From Trichoplax adhaerens (taxonomy: Eukaryota; Animalia; Placozoa), in assembly GCF_000150275.1 (NCBI RefSeq), contig NW_002060960.1:431702-495701 (forward strand): a DNA stretch of 64,000 nucleotides. The letters are read 5' to 3'. The notes below the pieces were generated by a model, which was not told the DNA's origin, made no database searches, and saw nothing but the letters and a program-made list of their open reading frames with translations. Shown piece after piece: positions 22,310 through 62,746 of this stretch; position 1 is the first letter of the stretch, and every line of letters starts with the position of its first letter. Position numbers and translations under genes: made by a program.

Positions 22310-22735
22310 AGAATTGCCTACCTAGCGGGAGAAGAAGCTGCGAGCCTAGGGCCGAACCTGATTGGCTCTAAAAGGCCTTCAAACATTAGTCAGAAGGACG
22401 AAAACAAGCGATGGCTAGCGGCGGCAGAAGCTTATAGTAAAATGTTAATAAATGTTAGTTCCCGTGTGGGAATTTGTCTGTAAGAAATTTATTCAAAACA
22501 TGTTGACAAATAGATCAGACCCAGTAGTTTAAAGGGGTCTTGAAGGAAGAGCTAAGGCAGCCTCTCAGTATTGTTACGTTAAGAGTATGAGATTAGTTTT
22601 TTACGATAGATTATAGATTTTTTTTTATTGCTAATACCTGAGAACCTTTTAATACTATAATAAAGTTATTTTTATTCTCCGGCGTTCGGTCTCGGTGTTA
22701 CTGTGTACAATAGTCAAAGATTAGCTTGGAAGGAA
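22310..22735 (+). repeat. Dispersed ~430-bp repeat, copy 2
   Basis: Homologous to the reverse complement of 9835-10270. Carries ATTGG (22361), a TATA-like ttatagtaaaa (~22432) and AATAAA (22659). Confidence 0.75.
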
Positions 22736-32220: not shown

Positions 32221-32312
32221 GCTGTATTGGACAAGTCTGATTAATATGAATTCTAAAAGGTTATATAAGAGCTATATTGGACTTGTCCAATTAGTATGAA
32301 TTCTAAAAGCTT
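32221..32312. repeat. 50-bp tandem duplication
   Basis: gct(g/a)tattggac..gtc..atta.tatgaattctaaaag at 32221 and 32271. Confidence 0.7.
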
Positions 32313-33043
32313 GCTTGATTCAGTTCCCCATTCGTATACAAGTTTTCATACTATAAAATACATAGGTAAGCTATAGCTTAATAATATTTAAAATTTTTGC
32401 ACAGTTATTGTTAAGCAAATTATCAAAATTAGGTAAACTTGTTACTTACCGACATGAAACAATTTCATTTTATTATGCATCGCTATTTTTATACTATATT
32501 GCATAAATAATATCATAACTTACCTTAGTAATTCTATGATCACTGCTAGAAGAAGCTTTATCTTCTTTTTTAGCAGCTTTTAATAGAAAATAAAGCACTT
32601 ATGATTATACTGGGCACTGTGCAGTGTGCATATAGAGATAAGATTAAATTCTTAATACTGTTTGTCTATATAGTATTGCTATCAGTTAATCTATAAGGAT
32701 CCTTAGTAAATGACAATCGTTCGAATTTAAAGTTATCGAAACTACTGGTTAGTGTCTATGTATAATTATAATGCTCGTAGCTTATGCAGACATGACATGT
32801 AACTTTAAAATATATTTTGAAAATAACTTAGCAAGTTAGCTTAGTATAAATTGTAAATGCTTATTTTGATAAAACTGTTAGTATACAGCAGATACATAAG
32901 GTAAAATATAAAGTAATTAAAATGCTGCTACTCATTAACAAAAAATTTTGCTAAAACGTACTTACTTTCAAAATTTGGAGTTGTAGAATTCTCATTCTTA
33001 AGGTATGGTAATCTAGACTTGCACCAATTTATTTCTCCCTATT

Positions 33044-38600: not shown

Positions 38601-41600
38601 GATTACCCTGAATTGAAGAAGGACAAGAAACTAATGCCGTTTTTCCACGATATGTTTTTGGCCATCGCATATCATTTGTTACTTCACCCAAACAAAAATC
38701 TGTCGTATTTTTATCTTTAAAAATATTTATTAGTCAAGCCTTCTATAGTATGCAAGCACGTATAATTAATTATTATCTGTGTATCATTAGCGTAATATCA
38801 TATCAAAAATCTAACCTTTAACAGATATAACTGCCATAGCTGATGATATGGACCCTATAACGTTCGTAAACTGACACCAATGTGATCCATTATCTCCAGT
38901 GTTAACATCTATGATAATTAATTTCCCATAGCCAGGACTAATTAACATGTTATATGCCGAACTAGTAAGTTCGCCATCTTTCATCCATTTAACACTCGGA
39001 ATAGGATCACCTGTTGCTGTACATTCTAGAGTTAAAGTAGCTCCAGCTTTAATAGAAATACTCTGAGGTGATTGGGTGACATTAGGTGCAACTACAATAT
39101 CAAAAGATCATCATATTAATACAGATCATTTTATCATTGCAGTAATTAGTGACATATGAGATAGTTAGCGAATAGCTGCAACGTAAACTTATTACCAGCA
39201 TTATGTGTTTCATATATAATCGATCTACTATAAGGTCCAAAACCAACTGAAGTCGATGCTGCCAATTGTATGGAGTAATTTTGTTGAGGTTGTAAATATT
39301 GCAATGTATGCTGAGTAATATTACCAACAATTATAATATTGTCAACAATCGGTTGTTTTAATAGGTTATATTTAATTCGATATCCGGTAATGATGCCGTT
39401 ATGATCATTTATAGGAGGTACATTCCATACAACCATAGCTGAGGTAGCACCCTGAGCGGTAGGTAATATTCTTATATCTACTGGTGTGGCGCTAGGTACT
39501 GTAGAATTATGTCAAGGAATTATTTACGCGGAATACGGTAGTATATTTATGATCTAATAAAATGACTTCAGCTCGATTTTGTAGAAAATAAAGCATTCTA
39601 GTAACATTGTGAGTTATTTATATTACTTAAATTACGAATAACACCAAGGTAATTTAAAAGACAATACAATATGGATTAAAACATACCTGATTCTAAAGTA
39701 TTGATGATATATTCGTTACTTCGTGGACTTACACCAGCTATTGTAAAAGCTTGTATGGATATCTTATATTTTGAAAAATACTTCATGTTGAAAACGGTAT
39801 AATTTCTAGAGTTACCAAGCAAGAACGTCTGATTTTCGTAGACTGTTAGATTGCTAACAAATTTATTGTTAGCATTATCAAGAATAAAGTGATAACCGAG
39901 TATAACTCCATTGCTAAATCTTTCAGAGATGACCTTAATTGCAAGTAATGAAATAGCATTACAAATAGCTCGAGAAACATCGTACTGTACAAAATAGGAT
40001 TTACTTAAATCATCTTATACAATGCTGACGTACTTGCCATCCGATATTAACACTGTTATTACTAACAAGTGAAATCAATTGCACCATAGGGCTTTCACTA
40101 GGTGCTATATTTAGTGATAATTTATAAAATGATTATACTTAGTACTTAGAAATAGATCACAAGTATAAGCATGGCATATCATATAATACAAGGATAGGTT
40201 ATAATGACATCGTTATCATCACCTGCTTGGCGTGTTATCACAGATATGACTGGACTTTCTGGCCCTAATCCGATAATTGTTGCCGCTTTCATGGTAATAT
40301 TGTATACAGTAAACGGTGATAAATTCATTAGTAATTTTGATGTTGTTGTAGCATTGACTGTAATGTTGCCGTAATCGTTCCACCGGGAAGAATTATAGCT
40401 AATCTTATAAGCGATAATAATGCCATTACGATCACTTAGTAAAACTGGCTGCCAGGAAAGGGTAATAGATGAGGCAGATATAACTAAACTTTTCACATTC
40501 TGAGGGTAGGATTGAGGTGCTAGAACATGACAGGAATCATTTACTTTAGCTAATTAGAAATGATTAATGATTTTATTAAGACTATCATATTTCATGCTAA
40601 AATCAGTTTTAGTTTAAACCTGCTTGATAAGTCGTTGATGATAGTGTAGGACTTTCAGGGCCAAAGCCGATCGCTGTTGCTGCTTTTATACCGATATTAT
40701 ATGACGTAAATGGACTTAAATGAGTTAATTTTACCGTAGTCGTGGAACTATTAACCATGAAATCTTTATTTGTATTCCACTGTGTCGAATTGTAATATAC
40801 CATATATGATACGATTACGCCGTTGCGATTGAAAAGCGCTAGTGGTTGCCATGAAAGTTCAATGGCAGTCGCAGAAATTACTCGTGAAATTATATTTTGT
40901 GGATAGGATCTGGGTACTATAATTCAATTAGAGTACAGTAGTATATTCCCAAAATTAGAATCAATAGAAAGCATCCGTTAGAAAATCAGACATTTAACAA
41001 AATAATTAATTATTATAGAAGACAGAACATTTTCTGATTATAATACGTAAAATTTTATTATATTTACGAGAATGGATCAAACCTGATTGATGTGTTGTAG
41101 ATGAAGTAGACGGACTTGCTGTCCCAAAGCCAGCTATCGTTGCTGCTTTGATGCTGATTATGTATTTAGTATAAGGAATTAAGCCATTCAATATCGCCGT
41201 AGTAAGTGACGAATTGATGTGAACTACACCACTATCACTCCACTGCGTAGAATTATAGTAAAGCTGATACATGATTATAACTCCGTTTCGGTCAAATAAG
41301 GGTAATGGCTGCCATGAAATGTTTATTTCTGCAGCTGATATTGCTGATGAATTCAAACTTGGTGGATATGATCTAGGCACTGTTTGATATCATTATCGAA
41401 AAGTAAATTTATAAGTTATCTATGAAACTAAATTTTATGATATCTATACTTTAAATATATAAAACCGCATAAGCTATGAGTGTATTTAGAAAAATTATAA
41501 TTTTAATACCCTAAAATTTTTGAATCAATTCTGTAAATAATTATATATATGCATAATTAATCAAACCTGCTTGATGTGTTGTCGATACCAAAGGAGGACT

Positions 41601-44600
41601 CTTAGGTCCAAAACCAATGATTGTGCTAGCTCTAAAGGTAATCTTATATGTCGTATACGGAATCAAATTTTGCAGCGTTGCTGAAGTTACTGAATTATTA
41701 AATTGCAGGTAACCATGATCATCCCATCGAGTAGAATTAAAGTATATGCTATATGAGGTAATGATTCCGTTACGATCGTATGGTGAAAGTGGTTGCCATG
41801 AAATGTATATTGATGTTGGCGATATCGAAATGGCGTTATCATTTTGTGGATATGATCTTGGAACTAATTAAATAGTAAAGAACTTGTTGGTAACATAAGA
41901 TACATAATTATGAAAATATTTATCACTGCTGTCTAAGAAATAATATGCATAATCGAAAACTTGGTTCTATAACTACGGTACAATCACTAGAAATAGCATT
42001 GTAGATTTTTGCTGAAATTCTAGCTATACGCGCAACTCTATTGATCCGTCATCCATTTATCTCATTTTGTGATAGATAAGTGAATATTTAAACGTCTTAT
42101 TCTATTGCATTCTTTATTTTACTGTATTATTTATACCACGGTATATTATTGTTTTATGATATCGACTTATCTCCTTTCGTGATCAAGATAAACTTAATTG
42201 CTTGACATTGGTAACGCTATTTGTTTTACTTATTTTCGCTTTATTATACAATCTTTTAATGCTTTATCTTTACCTGACTGTAACGTGGTTCCAACTACAT
42301 ACAGACTGCCTGGTCCAAATCCAATTGCTGTAGCTGCGTATACAGTGATTTTATACGTTGTATACGGCGTCAAACTTGGAATAACTACAGATGTTACTAA
42401 ATCATTAACGCGAATAACTCCATCAGTTCGACGTGATGTAGCATTATAAACCACTTTATATTCTGTAATGATGCCATTTCTGTCGAGTGGAGATAATGGC
42501 TCCCATTTGACACTTATAGATGTAGACGACAAATTCGAAATGGTAAAATCGGGTGGATACGAGCGTGGTGCTGTAACAAATGGTATAATTTATTATTAAC
42601 TTAAACTCAACTTTGTGATCTAATTCAAAACACAACCGTTTAAGCTATTCGAATAATATATAAACAGTGGTATTTAGTAAAGGGAAACTTAGTTATTTAA
42701 GTACGGTATCTGATAAAATCTGCGTTATAACGCACTGCTTATAGTTTATTAATAAAAGCCATCTTATAGAAACACAGCTTGGATGGGAACTCAGATTACT
42801 TTAAAATAGTATCAATCTAATATGGCCATTGTACGAAATTTTTAAGATGCGATGGCTGCCTTAACATTGGTTGTAACTCTATGTTCAAATTGTAATATCA
42901 AATCTATCATAGTTACGAACGATATCAAGAATTGAGTTTCCTTGATTTACGTACTGATATCAAAGGCCATAGTATTAAATGAAACATTTAATTCTTACCC
43001 GCTTCATAGGTCACAACCGATACATCAGGACTATTTGGCCCAAATCCTGCAATAGTAGCCGCTTTTACACTTACATTATAAGTAGTATAAGGTATTAGTT
43101 CCAGTATTATTGTTGATAAATCGGAATCACTGACTTGAATTGAACCGGTATGGTGCCACTGCAAGGATTTGTAGCTAATATTATATGTTAAAATAATGCC
43201 ATTCTGATTGAGCAGCATTAATGGATGCCATGAAACCTTGATCGAATTAGCGGTTAGCATCGTTGCATTGAGATTAGGAGGATAGGAACTAGGTACTGAA
43301 ATCACATAAATTAATGTTGATAATCTTATGACTATAGATACGATTTAAGAATAATTATTTGTACTGTAGTATTCTAGCTCGTATAGTAATTTTTGATTTG
43401 TTTTGATATATTTTACCTGTTTGATATGTCGTAGCTGATTCTATTGAACTTGCAGGCCCGTATCCTGCGATAGTTGTAGCTTTAAGAACAGCATTGTAGT
43501 TAGTAAACGGAATTAAATTTCTTATAGTAATATTCATAATCGAACTGTCCACGTATATGGTAGCATGATCATTCCATTTAGTTGAATTATAATTTATGCT
43601 ATAGGAATTTATAATGCCATTGCAATCAAAAACTCTGAGCGGTTGCCATGCCACATAAATCGAAGTTGGCGATACAGCAGTAAAGTTAATATTTTGAGGA
43701 TACGAACTGGGTGCTACAATTTATAAACCAATCAAATAAATTATTAGTTATGTTTTATGCAAACAATTCTTATAAGTTTAGCGTATTTTAAATCGTCGAT
43801 ACTGAATAATAGTTAATATTACAGATAAGCAAACACAGTTTTTACTGAAGAATTGAACAATTGATAGAGGTTATTTTAATTATATTCTGAGATGAAATTA
43901 TACAGCTTAAATTCTAAGTCCCAATCATTAGTCGATAATTAATCATTTTTAGCGACAAATCTACTAATAAAATAATTTATAAACATCTTTACTAAGTTTC
44001 TTTTGATATTGAGGCAAAGGTTTTAGAAGTACTTAATGTTTACCGGCTTGATAAGTGATAGTCGATGTATATGGGCTATTCGGTCCAAATCCAGCGGCTG
44101 TCGCTGCATTGATTGTCACATTATATATGGTATAAGGTATTAAATCATACAATATCGTATTAAAGGTTGTTCCATTAACTTGAATTATGCCTGTGTGATT
44201 CCATTGTAAGGAATTATAACTAACATTATAGGTTATAATAACACCATTGCGATTAAACAATATTACTGGCTGCCATGATATATTGATGGAATTTGCCGTC
44301 AAAGCAGTTGCGTTGAGATTGAGCGGATAAAAACTCGGCGCTAAAATAACCATTATGCATATAAATGGTAATAAGCTTTAATAACATCAACTAAAAGATA
44401 TTTCATTATACTTACTTTAAAATTCTCTTAATTGATTACATTAAGAGTCTAACCTGATTGATAAGTTGTAGACGATGTTACTGGGCTCTCAGGTCCAAGT
44501 CCAATAACAGTTGCAGCTTTAAGAGTAACATTATACGTAGTAAACGGAATTAAATTTCCAACAGTAACGTTTGTAGTTGAACTGCCAACTTGTACAACGC

Positions 44601-47600
44601 CATTATCATTCCATTGAGTCGAATTGTAACATATGGTATAGGAAGTAATTATACCGTTGCGATCAACAAATCTAAGTGATTGCCATGTAATATAAATGGA
44701 CGTAGATGACAAAGCGATAACAGTGATATTTCGTGGATAAGAACTTGGAGCTACAATTAATAAACACAGAGTTACATTTTATTAATTTAATAAAAACTTT
44801 CCATTATATAATACGTTAGTAGTCGGCATATTACAGTAAATACTGTTTGCAAATAATAACGTAATACTATAGATTTTGAGTATGTATAGCCGTAGCCAAG
44901 CGTATACTGTTGATATTTAGTTACAATACATATCAGTATGTATAACAATCACCAAAAATCATAAAATCTCTATATATGCAAATATATATGTACTCGCTGC
45001 TTTCATTTTACCTGCTTGATAAGTTGTAGCTGATATTTCCAGACTATACGGTCCAAATCCAGCTATAGTAGCAGCACTTACTGTCACATTATATGCACTA
45101 TAGGGCAACAGATTATGTAATACTGCTGAGAATGTTGAACCATTGACTTGAAGTACACCCCTATGATTCCATCGCAGAGAATTATAGCTAATATTGTATG
45201 CGATTATAATACCATTACGGTAAAGTAGCATTATTGGCTGCCATGAAACATAGATCGAATTGGCTGTCCATGCGGTTACATTGAGATTGGGTGGATAAGA
45301 GCTAGGCTCTGCAATGAAATACATTCAGAATGGTAATATTTTAAGGTAACAATGACATTACGATAAAGTTGATACTAGCACTTCTTTAATGACAACAAAT
45401 AGTCTAACCTGATTGCTGAGTTATAAAAGAAATAGTAGGGCTTGCAGGTCCAAATCCTGCGATAGTAGCAGCTCTAAGAGCAACATTATACGTAGTAAAC
45501 GGAATTAAGTTCTGCAAAGTCACGGTTGTGATTGAGCCATCAACTTGTAAAATGCCGTTTTCGTTCCATTGAGTTGAATCATAGCTTATATTATACATGA
45601 TTATAACACCGTTGCGATCGAGAATCGGGGGTGGCTGCCAAGTTATGTCGGCTGTTACAGGTGACGAGGCAATGGCACTGATCATTTGTGGATATGAGCT
45701 CGGAGCTTTTAATTTTCAAACAAAAATATTAAAACATAAATACGCACGGTAGTGGTTAATTTTAAGTTACTAATTAAATTTAGATATAATCTGCTATATT
45801 CTAAAGAGGGGTAATCTTTAATGTTAAAATTTATTACACTTTATTTTTGTTAGTTAAGATTATTCACCACAATAAAGAATTAAAAATATGTCTAGGCATA
45901 ACGATTTCCTGCTGAAAAGGGATAACTAATTGTATTAATATAGTTAGAATAGATGGATTATCGAGTTACCGTCTTCATGGCTTGTAGCATTAATAATGTC
46001 ACTAGCTATACCGTTATAGCCATACTTTATGTTATATGGTATGATTTGGTAGAAGTAAGTATGAGATTCATGTAGGTTTATCGAGTAAATTTCCGTTTCA
46101 AGTCCGTCGTATATTAAGGTCGAGTTATCGATTGTCCCATTTGTTGAAGAATTAGAAATCCATTGATACACACGATAGGCAAGAATACCATTTTGAATGT
46201 TTGGCGGTTGCCACACTATTTTAATAGACGTGGAATTATAGCCTAGAGCATACGGATTTCTAACAGAGCTTGCAGGAGCTATGGAATAATATAAGCAGCT
46301 TTTAAAATTATATATTAAAAGATCCATATCAGCTAATCACATAATATGCGCCAACTCACGTATAAATGATTTTAAATTTCGGTTTATCATTACATCTTAT
46401 TGCTTAATAATCCGTTCAAAATAATTCCAGCGCCTCATTAAACACAATTACCTGATTCATCTGTCCTGACTGATAAAACTTCTTTTCCGCTAACTCCAAT
46501 GGCATTTCTAGCCCATATTTGCAAGAAATAAGTAGTATATGGTGCAAGATGATAAAAAATTGTTAAGGTGCCGGTACTAGTAATTATACAGTCATTATTG
46601 CTTAAACTTGACAAGCAAGTACTGTTTAATGTTATGTTTAAATGATTATAAAGTCGAACTGTATAGTTTGTTATTGGAGAAAATCCATCAAATGCAGGAG
46701 GTAACCATGACACTGTCATATTTGTAGCTGTTACGTTCGATATATGTGGTTGTCGTATAGACCATGGCGATTCTACCCAAATACGATTAGTATAAAAATG
46801 ATAAATTAGAATACGCATAATGTTAGTAGTACCTTTGTGTAAAATAGATATTCCTACAGTAGTATTAAGATATAATCACAAGTGCATTAAATACCTTGAA
46901 TCATCACTGTGATCTCTGGAGATGTAGAGGAAATATAACCATTGCTAATATTACATAAGTAATTACCAGCATCTTCTCCTATCGATGAATTTAATTTCAA
47001 CTGACCAATAAATTCAGTTCCATTATTAATAAGTATAAGCGAAATAGAATATCTATTTTGTGTCAGTATTGTATTATTTCTTAACCAAGATATTTCAGTA
47101 ACAGGTGGTAGGCTACTTCCACGGCATTGTAAGATCATTGTGTGGTTAATAGGTACCAAATTTGGGGTTATGGGATTTTTAAAGCTTGGAATAGCTAAAG
47201 TATATCCGGTGTAAACGTTGAAAACTTAAGATTACTTTCTGAATATACCGAATCAAACGTCTAATGCCATATATTCACGAAGCATGAAGACACTGTAGTT
47301 TCGCTACACATACAAAATTTATAATTTAAATCAGTAAGTTATGTTAGAGTAACGGCTTTGAAAAACAACAAACACCGCGAATGAACTGTTATACATGTAC
47401 TTAAATTTAAACAAAAATAAGTAAATAAAGTATCTTCTAAGCCATTTGCAATTCTGTTGCATTGCTGGTAAATGGAATTACTATGATCATTTAAAAGTAA
47501 ACATCTATGAGTAAAATATGAATAAACTATAAATACGGTTGTATATGTATATAAAAATTACCAAATGTAAATTGTTTTTAACTGTGCTATATCTGTTACG

Positions 47601-50600
47601 GTCAATCCCGATAAAAGTGAATAATTGTAAACTGCGACGATAAGCTATTATGAGCTAGAAGATGCTAGCGGTATTGCTAATTGCTATAGCTTTATTAACG
47701 ATGTTATTATAATTATTGATAATGCTTACTTAATAAAGAATTCCATTCAGTACCGTACAGTATAGTTAGCCATGAATTTAGCATCAATAATCAAGATATC
47801 AAGTGTAGTAACGATATGTAACTAATAAGAATATTTGAAGAAATTTAACTTATATCTTTTCGTCAAATAAAGCATTGACTTTAAAAAAATTTTTTCTGCT
47901 TACCAAAAACTGTGACAATCGCGCTGTTACTAATAGTAATTCCTTCGGCAATGCTATAACGGCACTGATATGATGCTTGATCGTCTAAGGTTACATTAAT
48001 GATAGTAATGCGACTGTAGATGTAATTATTCCGAATGAACGTGCTGTTGTTGACATCTGACATAGGATTTCCATTCTTGAGCCATGTTATACTTGACACT
48101 GGATAGCTAGTCCCGTTACAATTCAAGGTATAGTCTTTACCATATAGTATATTGGCGCCCTGTGGATGTTGTGTTATAGTAGGATAAACTAGATTCAAAA
48201 AGTATAAATTATTAATTATTTAAATACTGCTCTTTCTAAATATTTTAAAATTGAGCTCTTTATACTAGTACTAATATCAGTTTCTATCATTATTTTCATT
48301 TATAATTACTAGTAAAGTTCCGTTCAAATGAACAGGTATATATTTTTCACAAAGCAAGACATGAAAAGGAAATTCACAGCCAGATTGTTTCTTACTACTG
48401 TATATATGCTTCTTCTGGGAGCTATACTGCTAAATCAGTTCGATAATATTAATTTCCTGTTAGCTTACAATCTTTTAAAAAATCACATGATATATCATTA
48501 TACAGTAAGGTACCTCATCCTTACTGGTAATACTGATATGAGTGCTTACGCCTTAAAACTGTATTTTCTCTTATATATAAGCGCAAATGAAATCTTTATG
48601 TAAATTCTGAACACGAGTATATGTTCTTCAACGTGACTACCGAGTGATAAATCTTCGACCACGCACCTCTCTAAAGTGCTTGGCTTAAATACCAGCAGAG
48701 AATCAATTTAAAACGCAACGTCTCTCTTATAAAATTCGCTTCTTAAAGCAGACCTCAGCAAATAATTTTAAAACTAATTACTGTGGAATTTATGCAACGT
48801 AAGATGCAATAATAAGGAGTACTGTATAATAAAGTAGGCTCAGTAACAGCGTATAACAAATTACAAGCCTCGGATAATGTATCTGAAAATTTTGCAAATC
48901 ACTACGACTGCAGTATCTCTTAATTCACTTCTAAATAACAGTATTTACCAGTTGGTAAAGAATTCGTAGAATCAAATTATATTAATGCGATAGTACTTGT
49001 GCAATGCTATCAGTGGTATTTGATCGAAAAATTACGATCCTGGTCCCAACTACATAATATAATCTAACAATAAAAGTTAAATATGCAGCTTAGTAAAAGC
49101 GATGATACTTCATGATCTACGAGTGCATTAATTTAAATTAAATAATTAATTAATGCGATACTATTATCTTTAATAAGTTACATTTCTTAAATTATTAGCG
49201 TGTCGTTATTCTTACTAGTGATATTTACTCAAAGCCGTTACCATGAGAATTCTTACATTATTCATACTTCCAAACTATGCAAGATAGCACTTGCAGCACC
49301 TGAGTGTATTTCACTACAATATTTCTTTCCTATCTTAATTTATACTGTGTTTAAATACTTTTCTCGTATAAATTAATATCTAAAAATTAGAATAGTAGCT
49401 AAATACTGAAGCTAGGTAATTATATAACAAGAAAACTACTCTTTAAGTTATGAAATATTTCGGTCTCTAAAGGAAAGATTATATAAGTCTGATACCGATA
49501 GCGACTTAAGCGTCTGATAAGCGAGAAATGACTCGATTTTGTAATAAGTAAATGAACCTGCGAATGATTATAGTTTAATATTACACCAGTAGTCCTAAAT
49601 ATAATTATTTTATGCAGAGCTAAATTAATTCATACATTAAGCATTCGATCTAAGTTCAACTCGAGTAAACTAAATAGTAATAAATTTATTCTAATTTCAT
49701 CGATATAATTATATTAAAAAATATCATAGTGTGATATTTAAATTATTTTATTCACATACATCAATTATAGACTCACCGATCACTTTTATCGATGTGTTAT
49801 TACTTCTTGTCGATCCAACTGTGTTAACGTATTCGCATTGATAATTCCCCATATCGTGTATAAACGTTTCTGTAATAACTAAACGACTATAAATATAGAA
49901 ACCTTCGACTATTGTCGTATTCTCATAGTTTATAACAGGGATTCCATCTTTTAACCAAGTAATAGTAGATATCGGCGAGCTTGTCGCGTTACACTCTAAT
50001 ACCGTCGTGTTACCTTCATACACAGATATGTTTGAGGATTGTTCAATGATTCGCGGCGCATCTATAGTCCGTCAAAATTTAAAATTATACCCAAATTAAT
50101 ACGATATGTGCATAGTAGATATCGATTAACAACAATAAGGCAATCATTTGTTTCTGTAAGTTTTTTGTATGATTCTCTTTCTGTAATTAATTATGCTACA
50201 ATATGTTATCGTCAAGTACAAGTTTGAATCATTTCTTATGGAGAATAATCAAGTTTTATTCTAAAATTACAATATTATTATTAACGCTTATATACTTGTA
50301 TTTTATGATAGTAACTTACATGGATAGATTCTAACAATTCGTATACCGCCTAAGTGACCGTATCCCGCGCTATTTTGACTCCAGCCGTAGTTAATTAATC
50401 CGTATAATGCGTTAGAATCGTTATGAGTTATTCTTATTCCGCCAATTGTAACAGGAACAGATGCAGCAACATAAGTTTCGTTAACAGTATTTGTAAGGAT
50501 TTGTCGCCATGTAATACCTTGTAGTATTACTCCGTTTAGCATCAATCCGTTCTTATATTTGTTTTGTATAGTAATCAACGCATAATTTCGATCAGTTCCT

Positions 50601-53600
50601 ATATTTGTAAGAGCAGACGGCAAGAATATATTGTAATCTCGACTATATTGTTCTATTGCTGGTACAATTGTCATGAATGGATCGCTTTTAGTATTATCTA
50701 CTTGGCCTCCTTTCGCGAATTGAATAACTAAGCATGGCTTATCGCATGTAACATACGAACTATCACCGCTGTTTAACTCAAATTCTACAAAATCTCCTCG
50801 AGACAGTTGATAATTTTGAGATGTTACTTTAACACTTACTGTCGTATTATCATGACCGCCGACAACACGATATACATCACCAGCTGTTCTATCAGCGAAT
50901 GTCGATATAATATAGTTTTTACCAAGACGTGTAATAGGTAAATGAAATTCTTGTATACTACTACAGCTTCCCACACTACTAAATATACGTGTACATTCAT
51001 TACCAGTCAAAACTCCAACATCTTTATCGGAATAGACAATAGCGCCAGATATGTCTGTTGTCGCTTTTAAATGAAATCCTTGCGAAGATTGTAAAGTAAT
51101 AGATAAATTTCTACTTCTTGAATAATATTGACCAGAATAGTAAACACTCACTGGGAAACTGATATTAAGATGTGTGTCGGCGTACTTAGCGATTATTAAT
51201 AGTTTGATATTAGAGTATGGTTTATACGCAGCGACAACATAATTCTTATCGTATAGATGACTCGGTAAAACTAATGTTGAAGCCATTTCAGGATAATCTA
51301 TATAAAAACTACTAACTGTTATATCTTCATCTGAGACGATATGAAAGATTTTAGAAGTCAATTCAGAATTAAAAATAAGTATAGTACTTGCGATTGTTAG
51401 TGTTTTTGATTCATACGATGCAATAGTGTATTCATTAACCGTATTAAGAAACTTATTTGTAACATTGACAACAGCTGGCTTATTATAACTTGTTATGGTA
51501 AGATAATATGATTGCCTGGTATTCATTCTTGGATAACCCACAAAAAACTCTCGTCCCGAACTTTTCTCAACTTTCGAATCTAGTAAACATAAGAACATAC
51601 ATATCTTAGTTAATTAACTACTACACAGTACATTGTAATCTTATCACCAGTACTATCTCTATTATATTTAAATTTAACAAACTTGTCGTTATAATATTAC
51701 ATAAATATTTATATAAACAATAATATACTCTATCGTAAAGACATCATCAGTTACAGCATAGCTAAACAAGTTGATGTAATTAAGTATTATATGTATTAAT
51801 ATAACTCTTGGTAATATCATAAACTATATACACGATATACGATACTAAAATACTACATGTCACTGTACGAGCGACTGTGAAGAGTTAAGTAACCAAGTTT
51901 AGCGAGTTTAATATTTACATATAGTGATCACAATTACTCACACTAGGAATCACTGACGTTACAATATGATGGCGTGTAATAGTTATTCTTATATAATAAT
52001 TGTTTATACTACAAGCTCTTGTAGTCGTAGTTCTAGCTAAAAGTAGATCGAAAGTGTACTGAAATAGTTCTGTGAATAGACATAATGTAGTCTGATTAGG
52101 TAATAACAATTGATACATGTGTATGTCTATGAGTATTATTGTAAGATGATTTATCAATGTTAGCCGCTGTCGACGTGTATAACATATATAACATATATAT
52201 AAGCCCGACAGATAGTTGAGTAAAATCAGCTCGCTAGCTTTATCTGATGTAAAGTTATAAGCTCATAAACTATTGTCTCTATTTGTACAAGTTAACCTTT
52301 GCGTTATCTTGTTACATAGCTGGCTTATGATACTGTAACACTGAGTTTCAATCTCGAAACTAAACTTTGTGTTTATGTAGTATTGATTTATATGCAGTAT
52401 TATTAAGTACAAGGTATCAATTATAGTATTGTTTAGGAAATCATGTAAACCAGTTATCAGTTACAAAAGTATTGTAACTATATTTGTTATAGCTACTTTA
52501 AAATATCGTTTTAACAATTATAATTTTTACTGTAACTAGAAATATCTAAACTATGATTCTATGCATTATACAGTACTTACCGTAAACAGTCACAATTGCA
52601 TCTTTACTTATAGCCGTTCCTTCTGTATTTCTATAACGACATTGATAGAATCCTCTATCGCGTACAGTTGCTTCTCTAACAGTGATACGACTATATATGT
52701 AAATGTTATCAATCGATGTAACATTATCGTAATTCGATATCGGATATCCGTTTTTGAGCCACGTAATGCTAGATATCGGATTACTTTTTCCATTGCAATG
52801 TAAAATCAGAGTGTTGCCATAGATAACGTCGGCGTTTTGTGGATGTTGCGTAATTACAGGATATACTATATTCAAATTAGATAGATAACAATAACTTAAT
52901 TACACTATTCAATGTACAGTATGTAATAAGTTTATAGAGTACAATAAGAATATCGAGACTATACATAAATAATATAGACTCACCGATCACTTTTATCGAT
53001 GTGTTATTACTTCTTGTTGATCCAACTGTGTTAACGTATTCGCATTGATAATTCCCCATATCGTGTATAAACGTTTCTGTAATAACTAAACGACTATAAA
53101 TATAGAAACCTTCGACTATTGTCGTATTCTCATAGTTTATAACAGGAATTCCATCTTTTAACCAAGTAATAGTAGATATCGGCGAGCTTGTCGCGTTACA
53201 CTCTAATACCGTCATGTTACCTTCATACACAGATATGTTTGAGGATTGTTCAATGATTCGCGGCGCATCTATAGTCCGTCAAAATTTGAAATTATACCCA
53301 AGTTACTTAATACGATATGTGCATAGTAGATATCGACTAATAACAATAAGGCAATCATTTCTTTCTGTAAGTTTTTTGTATGGTTCTCTTTCTGTAATTA
53401 GTTATACTACAATGTGTTATCGTCAAGTACAAGTTTGAATCGTTTCTTGTGGAGAATAATCAAGTTTTATTCTAAAACTACAATGTTATTATTAACACTT
53501 ATATACTTGTATTTTATGATAGTAACTTACATGGATAGACTTTAACAATTCGTATACCGCCTAAGTGACCGTATCCCGCGAGATTTTGACTCCAGCCGTA

Positions 53601-54790
53601 GTAAATTAATCCGTATAACGCGTTAGAATCGTTATGAGTTATTCTTATTCCGCCAATTGTAACAGGAACAGATGCAGTAACATAAGTTTCGCTAACAGTA
53701 TTTGTAAGGATTTGTCGCCAGGTAATACCTTGTAGTATTACTCCGTTTAGCATCAATCCGTTCTTATATTTGTCTTGTATAGTAATCAACGCATAATTTC
53801 GATCAGCTCGTACATTTGTAAGAGCAGACGGCAAGAATGTATTGTAATCTCGACTGTATTGTTCTATTGCTGGTACAAATGTCATGAATGGATCGCTTTT
53901 AGTATTATCTGCTTGGCTTCCTTTCGCGAATTGAGTAACTAAGCATGGCTTATCGCATGTAACATACGAACTATTACCGCTGTTTAACTCAAATTCTACA
54001 AAATCTCCTCGAGACAGTTGATAATTTTGAGACGTTACTTTGACACTTACTGTCGTATTATCATGACCGCCGACAACACGATATACATCACCAGCTGTTC
54101 TATCAGCGAACGTCGATATAATATAGTTCTTACCAAGACGTGTAATAGGTAAATGAAATTCTTGTATACTATCACATCTATCCGTACCTTTAGGTATATA
54201 TGCACATGTATTACCAGTCAAGACTCCAACATCTTTATCGGAATAGATAATAGCGCCAGATATGTCTCTGCCCGCTCTTAAATGAAATCCTTGCGAAGAT
54301 TGTAAAGTAATAGATAAGTTTCTACTTCTTGAATAATATTCACCAGAATAGTCAATACTCGCTGGGAAACTGATATTAAGATGTGTGTCGGCGTACTTAG
54401 CGATTATTAATAGTTTGATGGAATAATATGGAATATACGCAGCGACGACATAATCCTTATCGTATAGATGACTCGGTAAAACTAATGTTGAAGCCAATGC
54501 AGAATTAAAGATATAAAAACTACTAACTGTTATATCTTCATCTGAGACGATATGCACGATTTTAGAAGTCAAATCACTTGCAACAATATTCATAGTAGTT
54601 GCGAATATTAGTGTTTTTGATTCATACGATGCAATAGTGTATTCGTCAGCTGTATTATCAAACTTATTTGTAACATTGACAACAGCTGGCTTATTATAAC
54701 TTGTTATGGTGATATATTGTGCTTGGGTGGCACTCAGTTTTAGAAAACCTATAAAAAACTCTCGTCCCGAACTTTTCTCAACTTTCGAAT
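33044..54790 (-). CDS. Giant adhesion GPCR: [IgGFc-binding-Ig-Ig]x2, Ig, 15 FN3, Ig, HRM, GAIN/GPS, 7TM (about 3,500 aa; signal-peptide exon upstream of 54790 not found)
   Basis: Continuous chain of phase-compatible GT-AG exons on the minus strand from 54790 to a TAA at 33046-33044. All ectodomain modules are phase 1-1. Domain blocks are listed as separate features. Confidence 0.85.
36034..38699 (-). other. HRM + GAIN domain with GPS motif
   Basis: 38699-38607 and 38431-38325 give FCLGE..MRWPKTYRGKTALVSCP..GNASRLC..WESIDTTGC (HRM). 38140-37973 contains LYGGDI. 37829-37761 contains SNLLNLRNKLAW. 37605-37488 contains MDTLEDFA. GPS reads HCSYW...WETTGC...TVCYCNHTTTFATIL (36148-36034). Confidence 0.9.
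38816..39091 (-). other. Membrane-proximal Ig (I-set) exon of the adhesion GPCR, absent from the ORF track
   Basis: APNVTQSPQSISIKAGATLTLECTATGDPIPSVKWMKDG..., phase 1-1 exon. Confidence 0.88.
39196..46772 (-). other. Array of 15 fibronectin type III modules
   Basis: Exons 46772-46452, 46278-45970, then eleven exons of exactly 297 bp (45705-45409, 45308-45012, 44750-44454, 44340-44044, 43713-43417, 43295-42999, 42570-42274, 41863-41567, 41379-41083, 40916-40620, 40519-40223), a split module (40104-40034 + 39933-39687) and 39498-39196. Motif W.P...RNG.I..Y...L.P.T.Y...A.T..G.GP.S. Confidence 0.92.
46895..47194 (-). other. Ig domain exon
   Basis: LQCRGSSLPPVTEISWLRN...DAGNYLC, phase 1-1. Confidence 0.88.
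47904..51579 (-). other. Second IgGFc-binding-Ig-Ig unit
   Basis: Exons 51579-50320 (1260 bp; SSGREFFVG, STLVLP, GKNY, SDPFMTIVPAIEQY, GYGHLGG, FCGBP N-terminal-like), 50061-49777 (Ig), 48188-47904 (Ig). Confidence 0.85.
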
Positions 54791-54990
54791 CTAGTAAACA
54801 TAATAACATTGATATCTCAGTTAATTAACTACTACACATATCGTAAAGACATCATCAGTTACAGCATAGCTAAACAAGTCGATGTAATTCAGTTTTGTAT
54901 GTATTAATATAACTCTTGGTAATATCATAAACTATATACACGATATACGATACTAAAATACTATATGTCACCATACGAGCGACCGTGAAG
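49768..54990. repeat. High-identity intragenic duplication (~49768-51895 vs ~52975-54990), including intron sequence
   Basis: The Ig exons differ at about 3 of 285 nt by eye. Introns 50062-50319 and 53269-53530 align almost base for base. The upstream intron flanks also align, apart from an indel. Confidence 0.92.
52581..54790 (-). other. First IgGFc-binding-Ig-Ig unit
   Basis: Exons 54790-53531 (1260 bp), 53268-52984 (Ig), 52865-52581 (Ig); paralogous to 51579-47904. Confidence 0.85.
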
Positions 54991-57900
54991 AATTAAGCAA
55001 CATACGCGTATACATACAGTACAATGCACTATACCGCATACAGTATCCCTTCAACGTTCCAAATGAAAAGGCCCAATATCCCTCGAGAACAGCGTAGCAC
55101 GGCTAAAATCAACTGTGTGAGATATCGTATTTACTACTCCAGTGATGAACAAAATCGTAATGAAAAGGTAGCGGATGCATCATTAGAAGGAAAATTGCAA
55201 TCACGATACTGAAATTTTATACCCAACCGAACTTAAACTTATCAGTAAACTATTTCGCCAGAAAAAAAATTCTGCGACATTTCTTACGCAATATACTATT
55301 TCTATCTATATATGGTATGAAGATGGTAACGTATTCAATCGATTTCACACTAAATACGTACAGAACAAACATCAATTCTCAGTTGTTGAGTCGTGCCATA
55401 GTAAAGTATTATAAGCATAGATACGATATTATAAATAAACTCGTATTCTAAAAATAAATTTATTTGCAGGCCATACTATTAATTAATGTGTACTGTATAA
55501 GTAAATACGGTAAATAGAATTGATTATGTATTAACTTTTCCATTGGCCATCTTCAAATCAGTGCTTTGCACGATGAGGGTCTAGAGTATGGTATCATGGT
55601 TCTCAAAGGATTGAAATTAAAGAATTTTTGGTCTAGAGGATAATTAAGGATTTCAGTACGATGTTAACTTACATTTATTGTACGATGACATAATTATTTC
55701 AAGAACAAATAATTTTATTTTTTGTCTATAGCTAATATAATATCTTAACTATTTAGTCGCGATGCCTATCATTATAATGTGTCTAAGGATCGCTTGCGTA
55801 TGCAAGCAAAGCTTGCTCTGTCGATAACAACCGTTATAAGAAAATGTAACAATCAAAATGACTGTGTAGAAAACTCTATAAAGATTGTATGTTCATTCAA
55901 TTTTCATCAGAGTATTGCATCAAATCAAAATTGAAAGGCCCAAAGGCCACCCTTAGCGATATAACGAATACTGTTTTAAAAATCAGTACTCTGCAGAAAT
56001 GACTACCTTACAGCTATTTGTTTTACATGAAGAAATCTTGAGGTTAAGGTACTGTAAGAATCTTATACTGACCTATTGAAATGAACCCATAATCACAGCT
56101 ATCTATCAGTAGTATAAATGCCCCCCGCGCTGCTCGTTTAAAAGGTTGGGTGGGTGGGATATCACATTTCATTCTGTATCAAATTGATCCTTACTGACCT
56201 TCTTGCAAAGATAAGCCTACTAAATACAGGATAACCAGCCATCTTAACAGCGGCGCCATCATGCCGTTTCTGTACTGTAGGTACAAAGACTACAAAATCT
56301 ATTACATAGCAAAGCAAAAGACAACTATCAGCATAAAAAAGTGAGAATTTTCGATATTTTAGCAATAGATGCAATTCAAGATGTGGATAACATAGATTTT
56401 GAATTAGCGTTTTTCAGCATCAGCCAGTTCAATAAAGAAGACTTGTCGATTGTAGAAGGACGACTATTGAAATAAGGAATTGGTTGCATATCTTCTAAAT
56501 TTAGAAAGTACAGCATACGCTACGTGAACGACTATATTTACTGCCTGTTGATAAGGTCGTTAGCAATAGGTATACAAGGTTTCACATCTCATTAACCGAT
56601 TACTAAATAATTATTAAGTGTGCACGAGTATTACATTGCTGCTTGTAAGGACAAAATCTTAAAACTTAATGACTAAATAAAGGTTCTTAAATTAAGAACC
56701 TACTAGCATAAAATGATGCTTATGCCCTTAGAAGGCTTAGATAAATTTGATACATAGACTGTTAATACCAGGAACTAAACTTTGTTGTGGCTACATGCTT
56801 GGTATTACAACTCTAAAATACTAATTTGATAAAGCACTTAAGAAAAGCAGCATAATTTACATTAAGCTTACGCGTATTTAATTGTATTTGATAAAATTCA
56901 AGTAAAATTGCATGCAGCAGAAGAAATGATGGAACATATACTGTATCCTCGTTAGTACTATTTCTGGTTGACTGTAAAATTCTTATGCTATGCACCTACA
57001 AGATTGTCATCTATAGCTTTTAACATACCTAAAAATTTCACTTCGTATTCAATTTTATGAAATATCGAGAAATCGTTTAAATGATTTTTCTAAATCAGTG
57101 CATCAGGATCGTAGATTTACCGATCGTTATGCGTAGATTTTACGAATTTTGTCTATTTTAAAAGCGCTGCAGGGCACTTACTAGAATAAATTGTCTAGAA
57201 TCCCGCTATGACAGCTTCTAAAATGCCTATAGTCTAACATTTATTATAAGGCTACTACAATTAACGACCCTACGCTATTGTAATAAATTTTACAATCTAG
57301 CAATAGCGGGTAGCATATCCCGCAGCTATCATGCTATCATGGGGTTTTGATCCGATCCAGCTGAGTAGTAAATTAGCATAATTAATATCAAAAATATTAC
57401 GGTAAATTTGCGATGAAAACATAAAGCTTGTTAAGCTGTGATAATGTAGTCTTATTATTCTACAGTAACTATTCTTCGCCAAATTTTAGTTGATTATATT
57501 CGATATTAAGTTCATGATCAACTATCACGCAGTGCAGTCGATTTTAATTAGTGTTTTTAAGTACTCGAATTTACTGTAATCTTTTAATTAATAGGTTGTC
57601 TAGTTAGTAACATGATGGAAATAAAACCCTTAATGCTGGTAATTAATCGGAGACTAATGAAAGATAGTACAAAGTAACATTCGTCGCCTAGATTCCTATC
57701 CCGGCTACGTTCAGTATAGCACCGTAAATCACAATTGATCAGACTTTTCGCTATCCATAAGATGTCATCTTTTTGATCAAGGACTGATAAAATCACCATA
57801 ACTTTAGTCATCTTGTACAACGTAATTGTGCTAGATTTTATGTATCAATCTATTTTTGCGATTCCTTGTGGTTTAGTCGTGGAGCGACGCACCCCATATT

Positions 57901-58020
57901 TGATTATGTGGATTGCTGTATTTGATATAGTCAAGTTACTAAGAATACATATTTTCGTGAAGCTAATATTAGATGATTGATAACTACTCTATTCGAAATT
58001 GTTGATAACTAATATTAGTA

Positions 58021-58275
58021 TTATCGTAAAATAATATTCTAAAAGTATAATATTATAAGAACATAATCCGTCAGCAAAGCAACGGGAGTTTGTATAATTA
58101 TAACAACGTAATCCGTTTGCATAGCAACGCAAGGCCGAGTCACGTTTGAAGTATTATTGTAAAACAATATTCTATAAGTATAATATTATAAAAGCATAAT
58201 CCGTCAGCAAAGCGACGGGAGTTTTTGATATTATAACAATGTAATCCGTCAGCATAGCGACGGGAGTTTGTACTG
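58021..58275 (+). mobile_element. Cluster of four Helitron-3'-end-like hairpins in a ~133-bp tandem duplication
   Basis: ccgtcagca(a/t)agc(g/a)acgggagttt at 58068, 58201 and 58246, with a degenerate copy at 58113. Stem CCGTC/GACGG. Confidence 0.5.
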
Positions 58276-59578
58276 ATGAGGTTCTATTTAAGAAAAATTA
58301 TTTCATTTGATGATTTATGTCTGATTGCAGACTAATCAAGTTGTCGTAAATGGATTTAGCGAAATACATTTAAGAACTGCAGAGATGAGCTCATAAGGGA
58401 GAAGAGACTTCACTTCACTCTGAGCTTGGAATACTTTATATTTTAGACTAGATTCTTGCAGTAATCAATTATTGCTCTACTATTCCTAAAACCTTGAAAT
58501 GAAAGCCTTTTAAAATCTAGCATTGACTAAGACAGTTATTGTGAGACACTTTAATTACAGGTCGACATAAAAAAGTACTGCAAATAGTAACTGTTGCGAT
58601 ACGTAGTAAACTTTTTATTCCCTAAGCTAAAGCTATCCGATCATTCTTTCATACAAATCCGAGCCAAACAGTATCCATCAGTATCGTTCTCCAGCGATAC
58701 AAGATTAATTACCACGATCGCCATTGTAAGATGTAAAGTCAAGATCGTAAACAGATCATCACTAGCTCTTGAAAAATTCATAATAAATACTCGTTTCGTC
58801 ACAATTTAAATGGAAGAAACTATTGCCTTCTTCCTTAATTAAAGTCTTACGTCACTAAATAGTATGGTTACCATTTCCATAACTTAATAGCCGCTTCTAC
58901 TAAGAATAACTAATTCACCATCTTCTTTACAATTTACCAAACATCAACTATTTATGCCTTTTCAGATTTGATATAACAAAGTATTATGTTGAAGAACTAC
59001 GTATTTATGTTGATTTGGTAACTTTATTACAGTAGCATAGTCATATCTGATAATCTTGTATGACAAGGATAATAGTTATATGTTATGTTATATAACATTG
59101 GTTAATCATATGCATAGCTTTAAGTCTGATGAGGAATCTATGCTGTTATTTCTTTACGTAAGCGCGTAAGGCTATCTTCAAATTGTGTACTTCTACTTTG
59201 CCATTGCAACAAGCGACTCAAGATCAGATTTTTTTATGCTCCTTTTAAGATATTCTATGATTAAAGCTTAATTACTAGATTTGTCATGTTTGTTAACGAC
59301 CTCTAATCAAGCCTAGACCGTAAATAGGCGTAGTTGTTGCTTTCCTATATATGCGTCGAGAGAGTCTGCTTGAGTTTAACCTTTACCGAAAGCTAACACT
59401 ATGCTGTATTAGACAGTACTGTGCAACTTGATAATTTATTATGAATTCATGAAGTCCCTGGTTATGTATATCTATCTTCAGATACATCAAGATAGTAGTC
59501 CATGAGGGTGCATACTTTTTTCTAGTTTAAAGCGCAAATATAGCTATAAAAGTTAAAGTACTTATAACCGAGTCAAGT

Positions 59579-61855
59579 ATGGTTGGATATAGAGGTAAAA
59601 TTAAAATGGATACAAGAAGACTATCGCAGTCAAGCAATTCAACTCAAGCGGGGCCAAAAAGCTTAAAATATTCAAGTGGGAAAAAATTTGCTAAAGTCTG
59701 GAGGCAAGCAGTAAAGAATGGTGACAAAAAATTTTTCTTAAGAATTCAATATGATCCATTTGTCATTAGTACAATCACTACAACGGCTGAAGAACACTCG
59801 CATATGTCTTTTATGGCTAAGCTTGTTAAAAAAAATAATTTAGCCATCTTGGAAACCATTTTACAAGCTATACAGAATCCAAGATTGTTGGATAATCTAG
59901 CACAAATGGCTTGGAGAAGTAGAGAAGAAACTGCAAGGATAAAAACACTAAGAGCCGCCAGATTGCTTCAGAAAGAAACAAAAGCTTCCACATTGCTTCA
60001 AAATGAAAATGGAAGCTATACTGAATCCGTGAATCGAGATATTCAGGCTGCCTATCAGGATCAGGATAAAATTACAAACTTAGAAGATGATTCTTTAGTC
60101 TGCGAAAATCAAGAACATATAACACATTTAAAAAATCAAGGATATTTATTACACTTACTAAAAGCTCAAGATAATGATGGAAAAACTCTTTTGCATCACG
60201 CTACTAAAAAGAACAATGAAGATATTGTTAACCTACTTTTAGAACATGCCACTATGGTAGATAATCAAGATCGTGATATTTGTTCAGCTTTGGTAAATAT
60301 ACAAGATCATGATCATCATTCAGCTTTATCTTATGCAGTAATAAGTAAAAACGAAGAAATAGTTAAACTGCTTACAAAGCATGGTGCAGATACAAATATT
60401 AAATTTCAAGATAATTACAATATTCATTTACCATTCACTTTTACTTCACCTGGATTTTGTTTTACACTTTTGTTTATTGCGGTTTCACAAAACAATTTTA
60501 ATATAGCCAGGCTCCTTATAGAAAGCGGAGCGGATGCAAATATTAGTAATGACGATGGCACAACTCCTTTACTTTATGCAGCTAAGCAAGGACAATTTGA
60601 TATAGCTAAACTACTTGTAGATAATGGAGCTGAGGTAAATATTAAACAAAATAATGGTAAGACCCCCTTATATAATATAGAATTATACCCGAACGGCGGT
60701 TTTGATGATGACTTTGAAATCGTAGATGCAGAATTAGTTGAATTTCTTATTAATAGTGGTGCAGAAATAGATTTTAAAGATAGCAAAACACAACATTTTT
60801 TTATTTTTTTTGCTCAAGAAAATAATATGATAATGGTTCGGAAAATTTTAGAAGCTGCAGAAAATTATGATGATTTAAAATTTATTCTAAACGCTAAAAG
60901 CGATTGCAGAAAATTAGCTCTACACCATGCTGTAGAAAGAGGTAATGAGGAGATTGTTGAACTGATGTTAAAATATGGTGCTCCAGTGAATTTTCGAGCC
61001 TGTAGAGGCAAAACGGCTTTGCATTACGCATCCGAGAGTGCCTATGTGAAAATAGTTAAAACGTTGATAGATAGAGGAGCAAGAATACTTATGAAAGATA
61101 GAGATGACAACACAGCTTTGCACTATGTTGCTAGAAAGAATGTAGAAATAGTTGGCGAGTTGTTAAAAGGAATAAGAAATAGAGAAAAAGAATATATTCC
61201 AGGGCCATGGATAGATCAAAGAAGGTTAGTTGAATCACAGCAGCAGGCAGTTAGTAATTTCCTTCTTATACAAAATGATGATGGCAAAACAGCTTTGCAT
61301 TACGCTGCTGAATCTAGTAACACAAAAATAGTAGAAGAGCTGATAACCGCAATAAGGCCGCAAAAATGTATAGAACTCGAAGACACTATAGCGCAGGAGG
61401 AAGAAATACAGAAAATAAGAAGAACAAGAAATGGAGAAAAAGAACATATGCAAGGGCTAAGGGTAAATCAAAGAAAGTTAGCTGAATCGCAGCAGCAGGC
61501 AGTTAGTAATTTCCTTCAAATACGAGATAATGATGGCAAAACAGCTTTGCATTACGCTGCTGAATCTAGTAACACAAAAATACTAGAAGAGCTGATAACC
61601 GCTATAAGGCCGCAAAAATGTATAGAACTCGAAGACACTATAGCGCACGAGGAAGAAATACAGAAAATAAGAAGAACAAGAAATGGAGAAAAAGAATGTA
61701 TGCAAGGGCTAAGGATAGATCAAAGAAAGTTAGCTGAATCGCAGCAGCAGGCTGTTAGTAATTTCCTTCAAATACGAGATAATGATGGCAAAACAGCTTT
61801 GCATTACGCTGCTGAATCTAGTAACACAAAAATACTAGAAGAGCTGATAACCGCT
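59579..61855 (+). CDS. Intronless ankyrin-repeat protein, truncated by the assembly gap
   Basis: Multiple G.T.LH.A...G..EIV.LL...GA..N units. The C-terminal part is a 252-bp (84-aa) tandem repeat with anchors at 61283, 61535 and 61787. An alternative start is the ATG at 59606. Confidence 0.88.
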
Positions 61856-61905
61856 NNNNNNNNNNNNNNNNNNNNNNNNNNNNNNNNNNNNNNNNNNNNN
61901 NNNNN
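61856..61905. other. Assembly gap (50 N)
   Basis: Run of n bases. Confidence 1.

Positions 61906-62746
<841 letters not shown>

Follow-up and report, generated by a model that had tools for sequence, protein, structure and literature searches.

Tandem PF17517 head exons with clustered variation at the 5' end of a putative adhesion-GPCR gene of Trichoplax adhaerens

The 64,000-nucleotide stretch of Trichoplax adhaerens DNA considered here (the window; C1397:431702-495701 in an assembly of 105.6 Mb) carries on its minus strand two closely related exons, A1 and A2, that each encode an IgGFc_binding (PF17517) domain and seem to form the heads of an adhesion G protein-coupled receptor (GPCR) with a stalk of immunoglobulin (Ig) and fibronectin type III (FN3) domains. 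We consider it probable that they go back to a real tandem duplication within the 5' end of one adhesion-GPCR gene, with loops of the head that have diversified under selection and a remainder that has been overwritten by gene conversion. This reading builds on amino acid differences that cluster in the same short patches across four genomic copies, on an excess of non-synonymous change in these patches that recurs in a separate group of paralogues, and on a switch of site patterns within the exon.

Two variable head domains

Head exon A1 (positions 53531-54790, minus strand), the membrane-distal copy, and head exon A2 (50320-51579, minus strand) are both 1260 bp long with AG/GT borders and phase 1-1, and they are enclosed by two stop-free frames of 431 codons (53514-54809 and 50303-51598). 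Their translations match the PF17517 model of Pfam over positions 2-297 of 297 with 213.5 bits for A1 and 206.2 bits for A2 (cut-off 25.6), which places both in this family, and A1 is 100% identical to T. adhaerens TRIADDRAFT_60863 (P0001). BLASTP aligns the two frames without gaps at 364 of 431 identical residues; the exons are 84% identical at the amino acid level and differ at 105 of 1260 nucleotides (8.3%) and 66 of 420 amino acids. Both the equal exon lengths and all pairs of diverging patches quoted in the first-pass annotation were borne out by BLASTP and the splice borders, and its exon edge at 51580 was one base too far, given that the splice signal lies at 51579.

The heads belong to a longer duplicated (or converted) segment on the minus strand, the upstream copy of which (52961-55001) runs from within the upstream intron through the head exon, an intron of 262 bp and an Ig exon (Ig-B) to 22 bp past the latter. 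The downstream copy (49756-51893) has 103 extra bp at ca. 51628-51730 in its upstream intron, and the two copies are ca. 93% identical when the window is compared with itself by blastn, with a head-to-Ig intron of 258-262 bp. Copy against copy, the intron between head and Ig exon differs at 14 of 296 positions (4.7%), the upstream intron at 14 of 211 (6.6%) and Ig-B from its twin Ig-B' at just 3 of 285 nucleotides and one amino acid. The near-identical background described at first pass therefore holds for the Ig exon but not for the rest, which has diverged by about 4-5% at the nucleotide level, and the longest run of identical nucleotides shared by A1 and A2 measures 68 nt, which does not stand out (p=0.22). 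We note that the 103-bp AT-rich stretch upstream of A2 (51628-51730) is missing upstream of A1 and is also found upstream of two further head exons, B1 and B2, on scaffold C1337. A transposon at the border of the duplication in the window was considered and rejected, the shared 163-bp upstream segment having only the four expected copies.

Between the two units lies a unique spacer of 1067 bp that contains an in-frame Ig exon, Ig-A, which is only ca. 66% identical to its downstream counterpart Ig-A' (66.6% by blastn, to 47899-48199). Because the Ig-A exons are this dissimilar, the head-plus-Ig units appear to be old, suggesting that an ancient duplication of the head and two Ig exons with later homogenization of the head and the first Ig exon fits better than a recent and simple tandem duplication.

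The 66 amino acid differences between A1 and A2 are clustered: when counted in windows of 15 codons, their variance and their maximum are each higher than in any of 10,000 permutations (p<=1e-4), and the longest identical run has 65 residues. At the nucleotide level, the contrast is chiefly one between the two ends of the exon, with 81 differences in the first 660 nt and 24 in the last 600 nt. The variable patches lie in the 5' part of the exon (codons 7-213; 54171-54790, minus strand, in A1) and occupy codons 19-33, 69-80, 99-107, 125-131, 150-153, 178-182 and 200-214. The genome holds 24 matches to the head exon, among them B1 (88% identity to A1) and B2 (86%) on scaffold C1337 of 28.7 kb, and the same patches differ in all four copies. 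The two upstream heads (A1 and B1) differ at 53 amino acids and the two downstream heads (A2 and B2) at 37, and the downstream head hardly varies in patches 1, 2 and 4.

An AlphaFold2 model of the head computed from a 44-sequence alignment has a predicted local distance difference test score (pLDDT) of 93.7 and a predicted template modelling score (pTM) of 0.93. A phmmer search against PDB sequences found no solved relatives, and for the fold of the whole domain Foldseek returned only Ig-like strings with template modelling (TM) scores of 0.1-0.15 and VIA a best Z-score of 5.0. Only the first subdomain (model residues 3-108) gave a usable match; it is a beta-sandwich that superposes on TM1070 (1nc7_A; Z 10.2, root-mean-square deviation 4.1 Å over 101 aligned residues) and on macroglobulin (MG) domains (Z 6.6-7.0), and with TM1070 / Anabaena sensory rhodopsin transducer and the MG domains of C3 and TEP1 it has only the general beta-sandwich arrangement in common at 9-17% identity. 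On the secondary-structure map of the model, the patches correspond to loops and hairpin tips, with 35 variable positions in the even-numbered loops L02-L16 and a single one in the odd-numbered loops L01-L15. In up-and-down beta-sheets, variation in every second loop would put the variable loops at one pole of the two predicted beta-sandwich subdomains.

Selection and gene conversion

Pairwise ratios of non-synonymous to synonymous change (dN/dS, omega) were calculated by NG86, and the site models M1a and M2a were fitted with our own GY94/F3x4 implementation. For A1 and A2, dN/dS is 1.26 over the whole exon, 1.55 over codons 7-216 and 0.71 over codons 217-426, and the other pairs behave alike with 1.15-1.26 over the whole exon in five of six pairs (0.9-1.26 for all) and 1.38-1.62 over codons 7-216. 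Inside the patches, the ratio of non-synonymous to synonymous proportions (pN/pS) amounts to 2.0 for A1-A2, 2.2 for B1-B2, 2.9 for A1-B1 and 1.2 for A2-B2, as compared to 0.45-0.7 outside (1.18 for A2-B2). M2a is favoured over M1a with twice the difference in log-likelihood (2dlnL) at 51 for codons 7-213 and at 77 for all codons, assigning an omega of ca. 12.5 to 14% and 9% of codons, respectively. The sites singled out by M2a are codons 28, 51, 77, 102, 126, 130, 152, 153, 179, 180, 204, 215, 299 and 410. A contig of Trichoplax sp. H2 carries a B1-like head exon (98.6% identity) that is separated from B1 by 15 non-synonymous and three synonymous changes, and 11 of the 13 codons with a changed amino acid are already variable among the four copies; for comparison, the genome-wide dN/dS between lineages H1 and H2 is 0.37 at a dS of 0.024 (PMC6057997).

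The same pattern recurs in an independent group of paralogues that are 46-48% identical to A1, namely L005 (C1369:56941), L006 (C1402:1634526), L007 (C1369:16928) and L008 (C1369:21989). Tests were run on the trio of L005, L006 and L008, which are 87-90% identical to each other, and L007 was aligned but left outside the tests. In the trio, variation falls on the same columns of the alignment (29 overlaps vs 11.9 expected, p=1.2e-8), with pN/pS of 2.0-3.4 in the patches as defined on A1 and A2 and of 0.6-0.7 elsewhere. Synonymous proportions (pS) are equal inside and outside the patches for L005-L006 and L005-L008, each of the three pairs has a pN 4-5 times that outside, and M2a is preferred over M1a with a 2dlnL of 34.6 on a three-taxon star tree that leaves no room for topology error. 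FN3-like matches adjoin this group (C1402:1638553 and C1369:24430), so its members probably head paralogous receptors, and C1369 may relate to C1402 as C1337 does to C1397. The diversifying selection proposed by the first-pass annotation is thus supported by the dN/dS values of A1 and A2, by a patch pN/pS of 2.0-2.9 in three of four pairs, by the better fit of M2a and by replication in the paralogues; an omega above 1 was found at a defined subset of codons, estimated from few sequences that have recombined and with our own implementation.

A plain loss of constraint would have redundant heads whose permissive loops drift with an omega of about 1 around a constrained core, the contrast to the intron being the work of conversion. 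Such drift would agree with a whole-exon dN/dS of only 0.9-1.26, with non-significant pairwise Fisher tests of the 5' part, with the low patch pN/pS of A2-B2 and with the location of most variable positions in loops. It is difficult to align with the clear superiority of M2a over an M1a model that already includes a class of omega=1 and with the patch pN/pS of the paralogue trio, where predefined patches were used and pS is equal in two pairs. In addition, 21 codons show three or four different residues among four copies (A1, A2, B1 and B2) that have diverged by only 4-8% at the nucleotide level, and none of the five 1260-bp copies has acquired a stop or an indel. We thus regard relaxed constraint as an unlikely explanation of the patches.

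Different parts of the head exon seem to have different histories. In its 5' part, most informative sites pair copies of the same position (26 sites; A1 with B1, A2 with B2) and few pair copies of the same scaffold (four sites), and in the 3' part of A1 together with the next intron (53269-54170, minus strand), which we regard as a conversion tract, 11 sites group them by scaffold (A1 with A2, B1 with B2) and two by position. The switch from position to scaffold within the exon is significant (Fisher p=1.4e-5), and the divergence of the tandem copies steps down along the segment from a dS of ca. 0.10 in the 5' part of the exon over 0.05 in its 3' part and 4.7% in the intron to 1% in the Ig exon. 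Inside the patches, pS between A1 and A2 reaches 0.185 as compared to 0.052 outside, as expected if the patches keep an old divergence while conversion renews the remainder. The switch and this difference in pS back the earlier idea of gene conversion that spares the patches; of the GENECONV-type check proposed along with it, a Sawyer-type longest-run test was weak (p=0.007 for the best pair, A2-B2, and p=0.10 for A1-A2) and it was the site-pattern switch that proved informative. Selection and conversion had been put forward as alternatives, and the comparison of these sequences supports that they act together.

The elevated pS of the A1-A2 patches could equally be taken to mean that mutation rather than selection made the patches, either through short ectopic conversion tracts from diverged family members, for which the ca. 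24 family exons in the genome are potential donors, or through multi-nucleotide mutations, since in 21 of the 66 differing codons two or three nucleotides have changed. However, the nearest paralogues L005-L008 (46-48% identical) share no patch sequence with these heads, and within the trio, two of the three pairs have the same pS in the patches as elsewhere, with pN raised 4-5 times in the patches of all three. Imported neutral blocks would furthermore bring along the family-average pN/pS, which would be well below 1 and not 2-3, and we judge a purely mutational origin to be very unlikely.

Diversifying selection and conversion acting on the same exon may thus be pictured as follows. Two old head-plus-Ig units would have been homogenized repeatedly over the segment from the head to Ig-B, most strongly at Ig-B (1%), less so in the intron and the 3' part of the head (ca. 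5%) and least in the 5' half (dS ca. 0.10). In this half, about 10-14% of codons in seven short loop patches would be under diversifying selection and escape homogenization, and the loops would form a putative ligand-contacting surface at the tip of the receptor. Of this picture, the sequences show the duplication, the mosaic history and the surplus of amino acid change at fixed loop positions that recurs in the second group of paralogues.

Several points weigh against this picture. The patch test on A1-A2 is circular in that the patches were defined on this pair, simple Fisher tests on single pairs give weak p values of 0.10-0.22 in the 5' part and of 0.016-0.06 in the patches, and A2-B2 shows no patch excess (pN/pS 1.2 vs 1.18 outside). 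The tests cover five close sequences and three paralogues only, the M1a/M2a code is our own, and recombination, which is demonstrably present, can inflate tests of the M2a type; in pairs of more remote family members (L014/L015 and L018/L019), purifying selection is all that was seen. Structurally permissive loops would collect neutral changes, too, the Cys-Cys loop L17 breaks the rule of loop parity, and the co-location of the patches in one ligand-contacting face is itself deduced from this parity in a predicted model. Lastly, that both heads would be part of one mRNA is deduced from exon order, strand, phase and the single signal-peptide exon.

The receptor gene and its sister copies

The window has a G+C content of 32% and its genes carry introns; all searches were made exon by exon without joining a spliced model, and all exons described in the following lie on the minus strand. 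A signal-peptide exon at 56199-56262, with its ATG at either 56262 or 56259 and a phase-1 donor after 56199, is outside the duplicated segment and is the only signal-peptide site in the window that a six-frame search with the N-terminus of TRIADDRAFT_60863 detected. After A1 follows Ig-B (52984-53268; 285 bp, phase 1-1, Pfam I-set/Ig_3), and the splice from head exon to Ig-B is visible in a protein of Trichoplax sp. H2 (P0002). Ig-A (52581-52865; Pfam Ig_3/I-set) was placed in the spacer by its splice borders, Ig-B' (49777-50061) was recognized downstream of A2 by self-blastn and splice borders, and Ig-A' (47904-48188) by Pfam and splice borders. The stalk (39146-47159) consists of one more Ig exon (47159-46887) and some 13 FN3 exons, as judged from the list of open reading frames (ORFs) and from repeat families, and includes a Pfam fn3 match at 46438-46818. 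Its FN3 exons at 41000-45710 belong to two alternating repeat families, D1 and D2 (61-71% identity), which indicates the serial duplication of a two-exon FN3 unit.

Further downstream, an adhesion-GPCR core (33619-38984) comprises Ig (38984-38811), HRM (38691-38566), GAIN (38131-37961), GPS (36116-35949) and 7tm_2 exons (35628-33619). GPS (35949-36116) scores 25.2 bits at a Pfam cut-off of 22.5 and 7tm_2 (34878-35108) 30.6 bits at a cut-off of 20.6, and the single-exon matches to GAIN (21.6 bits) and HRM (20.3 bits) are both below their Pfam cut-offs. This locus thus has GAIN/GPS just ahead of 7tm_2, the hallmark of adhesion GPCRs (class B2). Because a single signal-peptide exon is located outside the duplication, phase 1-1 is uniform across every exon that was checked for it, and GAIN/GPS/7tm_2 lie further down the same strand, the exons seem to be read most economically as a single adhesion GPCR that has two heads, with transcript continuity as the premise. 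The order of the predicted protein would be signal peptide, A1, Ig-B, Ig-A, A2, Ig-B', Ig-A', Ig, about 13 FN3, Ig, HRM, GAIN/GPS and 7TM, and we found no description of a PF17517-headed adhesion GPCR in the literature.

The uniform phase 1-1 also means that skipping either unit keeps the reading frame and, with only one signal-peptide exon and with units that differ mainly in their putative binding loops, the gene might use its units alternatively to make receptors with different tips in a Dscam-like manner. Such a cassette is very unlikely, though, given that the units are two-exon blocks with a distinct Ig exon in between and not adjacent variants of a single exon, and that the family includes proteins with two heads in series such as P0009, in which two PF17517 domains in one chain are followed by Ig and FN3. 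Alternative use of the units would in any case be compatible with the evolutionary conclusions on selection and conversion.

It is extremely unlikely that the tandem arrangement is an artefact in which the assembler set two haplotypes of a single-copy exon one after the other, even if this is an old Sanger draft and C1337 attests to poor local assembly, being itself a patchwork. Positions 49-56 kb contain no run of Ns, the only one in the window being at 61856-61905, and the copies are separated by the 1067 bp of unique sequence with its in-frame Ig exon. Moreover, C1337 independently has an A1-type and an A2-type exon, with a second contig that joins Ig-A to the downstream head, the informative sites in the 5' part of the exon go by position (26) rather than by scaffold (4), and related two-head proteins exist.

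C1337 matches window positions 49308-61855 at 92-97% identity and can be read as having the same two-head layout, because both the N gap and the ends of the second contig in C1337 are located where assembly would be expected to collapse Ig-B exons this similar. For the remainder of the gene (34000-49300) the assembly offers no second copy, which fits C1337 as a divergent and separately assembled haplotype. Elsewhere, C1337 is 67-100% identical to distant parts of C1397, and it may be an allele or a paralogue. The genome-wide rate of single-nucleotide polymorphisms in Trichoplax is ca. 1% (PMC6057997), so that alleles diverging by 4-8%, as these copies do, would be an exception.

We made several further observations on C1337. 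At 22728-23059 (L022:2728-3059), matching the window border 55001/55002, it carries a repeated element of ca. 380 bp that is absent from the window and for which at least 40 copies at ca. 90% identity were listed, with 498 first-look candidates. Its blocks homologous to window positions 56161-55762 and 55767-55002 are in swapped order. Homology to the window ends at the 61856-61905 gap, beyond which C1337 continues with 98-100% identity to C1397:565-568 kb, suggesting paralogous ankyrin genes together with a possible mis-join. C1337:5765-12465 (L021:5765-10000 and L023:1-2465) is only 66-71% identical to window positions 24034-31034, and its first 2.4 kb match window positions 31506-33905 at 97%. 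Behind this could be a chimeric scaffold or, alternatively, a paralogous block of old age.

Beyond the receptor gene, the window has a plus-strand ankyrin-repeat ORF at 59579-62101 with three 252-bp tandem repeats (61164-61919) and the gap of 50 Ns at 61856-61905, as well as a single frame of 1280 codons on the minus strand (16383-20225) with tetratricopeptide (TPR) repeats that by eye are of the kinesin-light-chain (TPR_12-like) type.

Known receptors and the PF17517 family

PF17517 domains head thousands of animal and bacterial surface proteins (5229 representative clusters in a library search), yet the family, including human FCGBP, is without a solved structure or a known ligand. The ca. 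20 loop positions marked by selection offer a concrete hypothesis for where these domains bind, and the locus is a compact case of conversion and diversifying selection on one exon. Binding at the putative tip would be read out through the GAIN/7TM core, candidate ligands being a microbe, a food cue or a receptor on another cell. Placozoans are among the simplest animals, and a fast-evolving head coupled to a GPCR would be a candidate, open to testing, for the recognition of cells, clones (cell-cell, clone-clone) or microbes at the base of animal evolution. Going further, we tentatively propose, as a possibility to which we assign low confidence, that PF17517 heads are the variable modules of placozoan self/non-self or microbe discrimination, with loops comparable to complementarity-determining regions (CDRs), diversity kept by balancing or diversifying selection, conversion that shuffles variants between tandem heads and haplotypes, and signalling as adhesion GPCRs. 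If true, the self/non-self reading would for the first time offer a way into the function of the N-terminal domain of FCGBP. Literature searches found no description of a placozoan recognition receptor with variable tips, of hypervariable loops in or selection on PF17517, or of Trichoplax PF17517 domains.

Invertebrate allorecognition receptors with a hypervariable membrane-distal domain are encoded by Alr1/Alr2 of Hydractinia and in the fuhc region of Botryllus. The locus described here resembles them in having hypervariable positions clustered at the tip of a surface receptor, in belonging to a gene family in which recombination or conversion shuffles variants, and in the failure of divergent variants to co-assemble. 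Unlike the Ig-like domains of these systems, the variable domains here are PF17517 beta-sandwiches, the signalling core is a GPCR, and the comparison is one of two putative haplotypes and one sister lineage. We know of no allorecognition phenotype or population polymorphism at this locus in placozoans. In the peptide-binding region of the major histocompatibility complex (MHC) and in the evolution of KIR/LILR-type receptors, an omega above 1 at few contact codons is accompanied by inter-locus conversion that homogenizes the remainder. The Trichoplax heads resemble these systems in both traits and in the raised synonymous divergence around selected sites, while fold and organism are unrelated.

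With other adhesion GPCRs (class B2) of the Ig/FN3-rich kind, the predicted receptor shares HRM, GAIN, GPS, 7tm_2 and a long modular ectodomain, but its heads are fast-evolving PF17517 domains. To our knowledge, placozoans do not have IgG. For human FCGBP, a recombinant protein of the N-terminal domain together with two VWD domains did not bind IgG (PMC8267560), so that the name of the family gives no functional lead. The N-terminal domain of vertebrate FCGBP is of the same PF17517 family to which the heads belong with 206-213 bits, and A1, like it, comes right behind the signal peptide in a large protein that is secreted or on the cell surface. In FCGBP, however, this domain is followed by VWD-C8-TIL repeats, whereas at this locus PF17517 occurs twice on an Ig/FN3 stalk with HRM that ends in GAIN and 7tm_2, which sets the predicted receptor apart from FCGBP proper; within the family, VWD, C8 and TIL are confined to other proteins, for instance P0038 and P0043.

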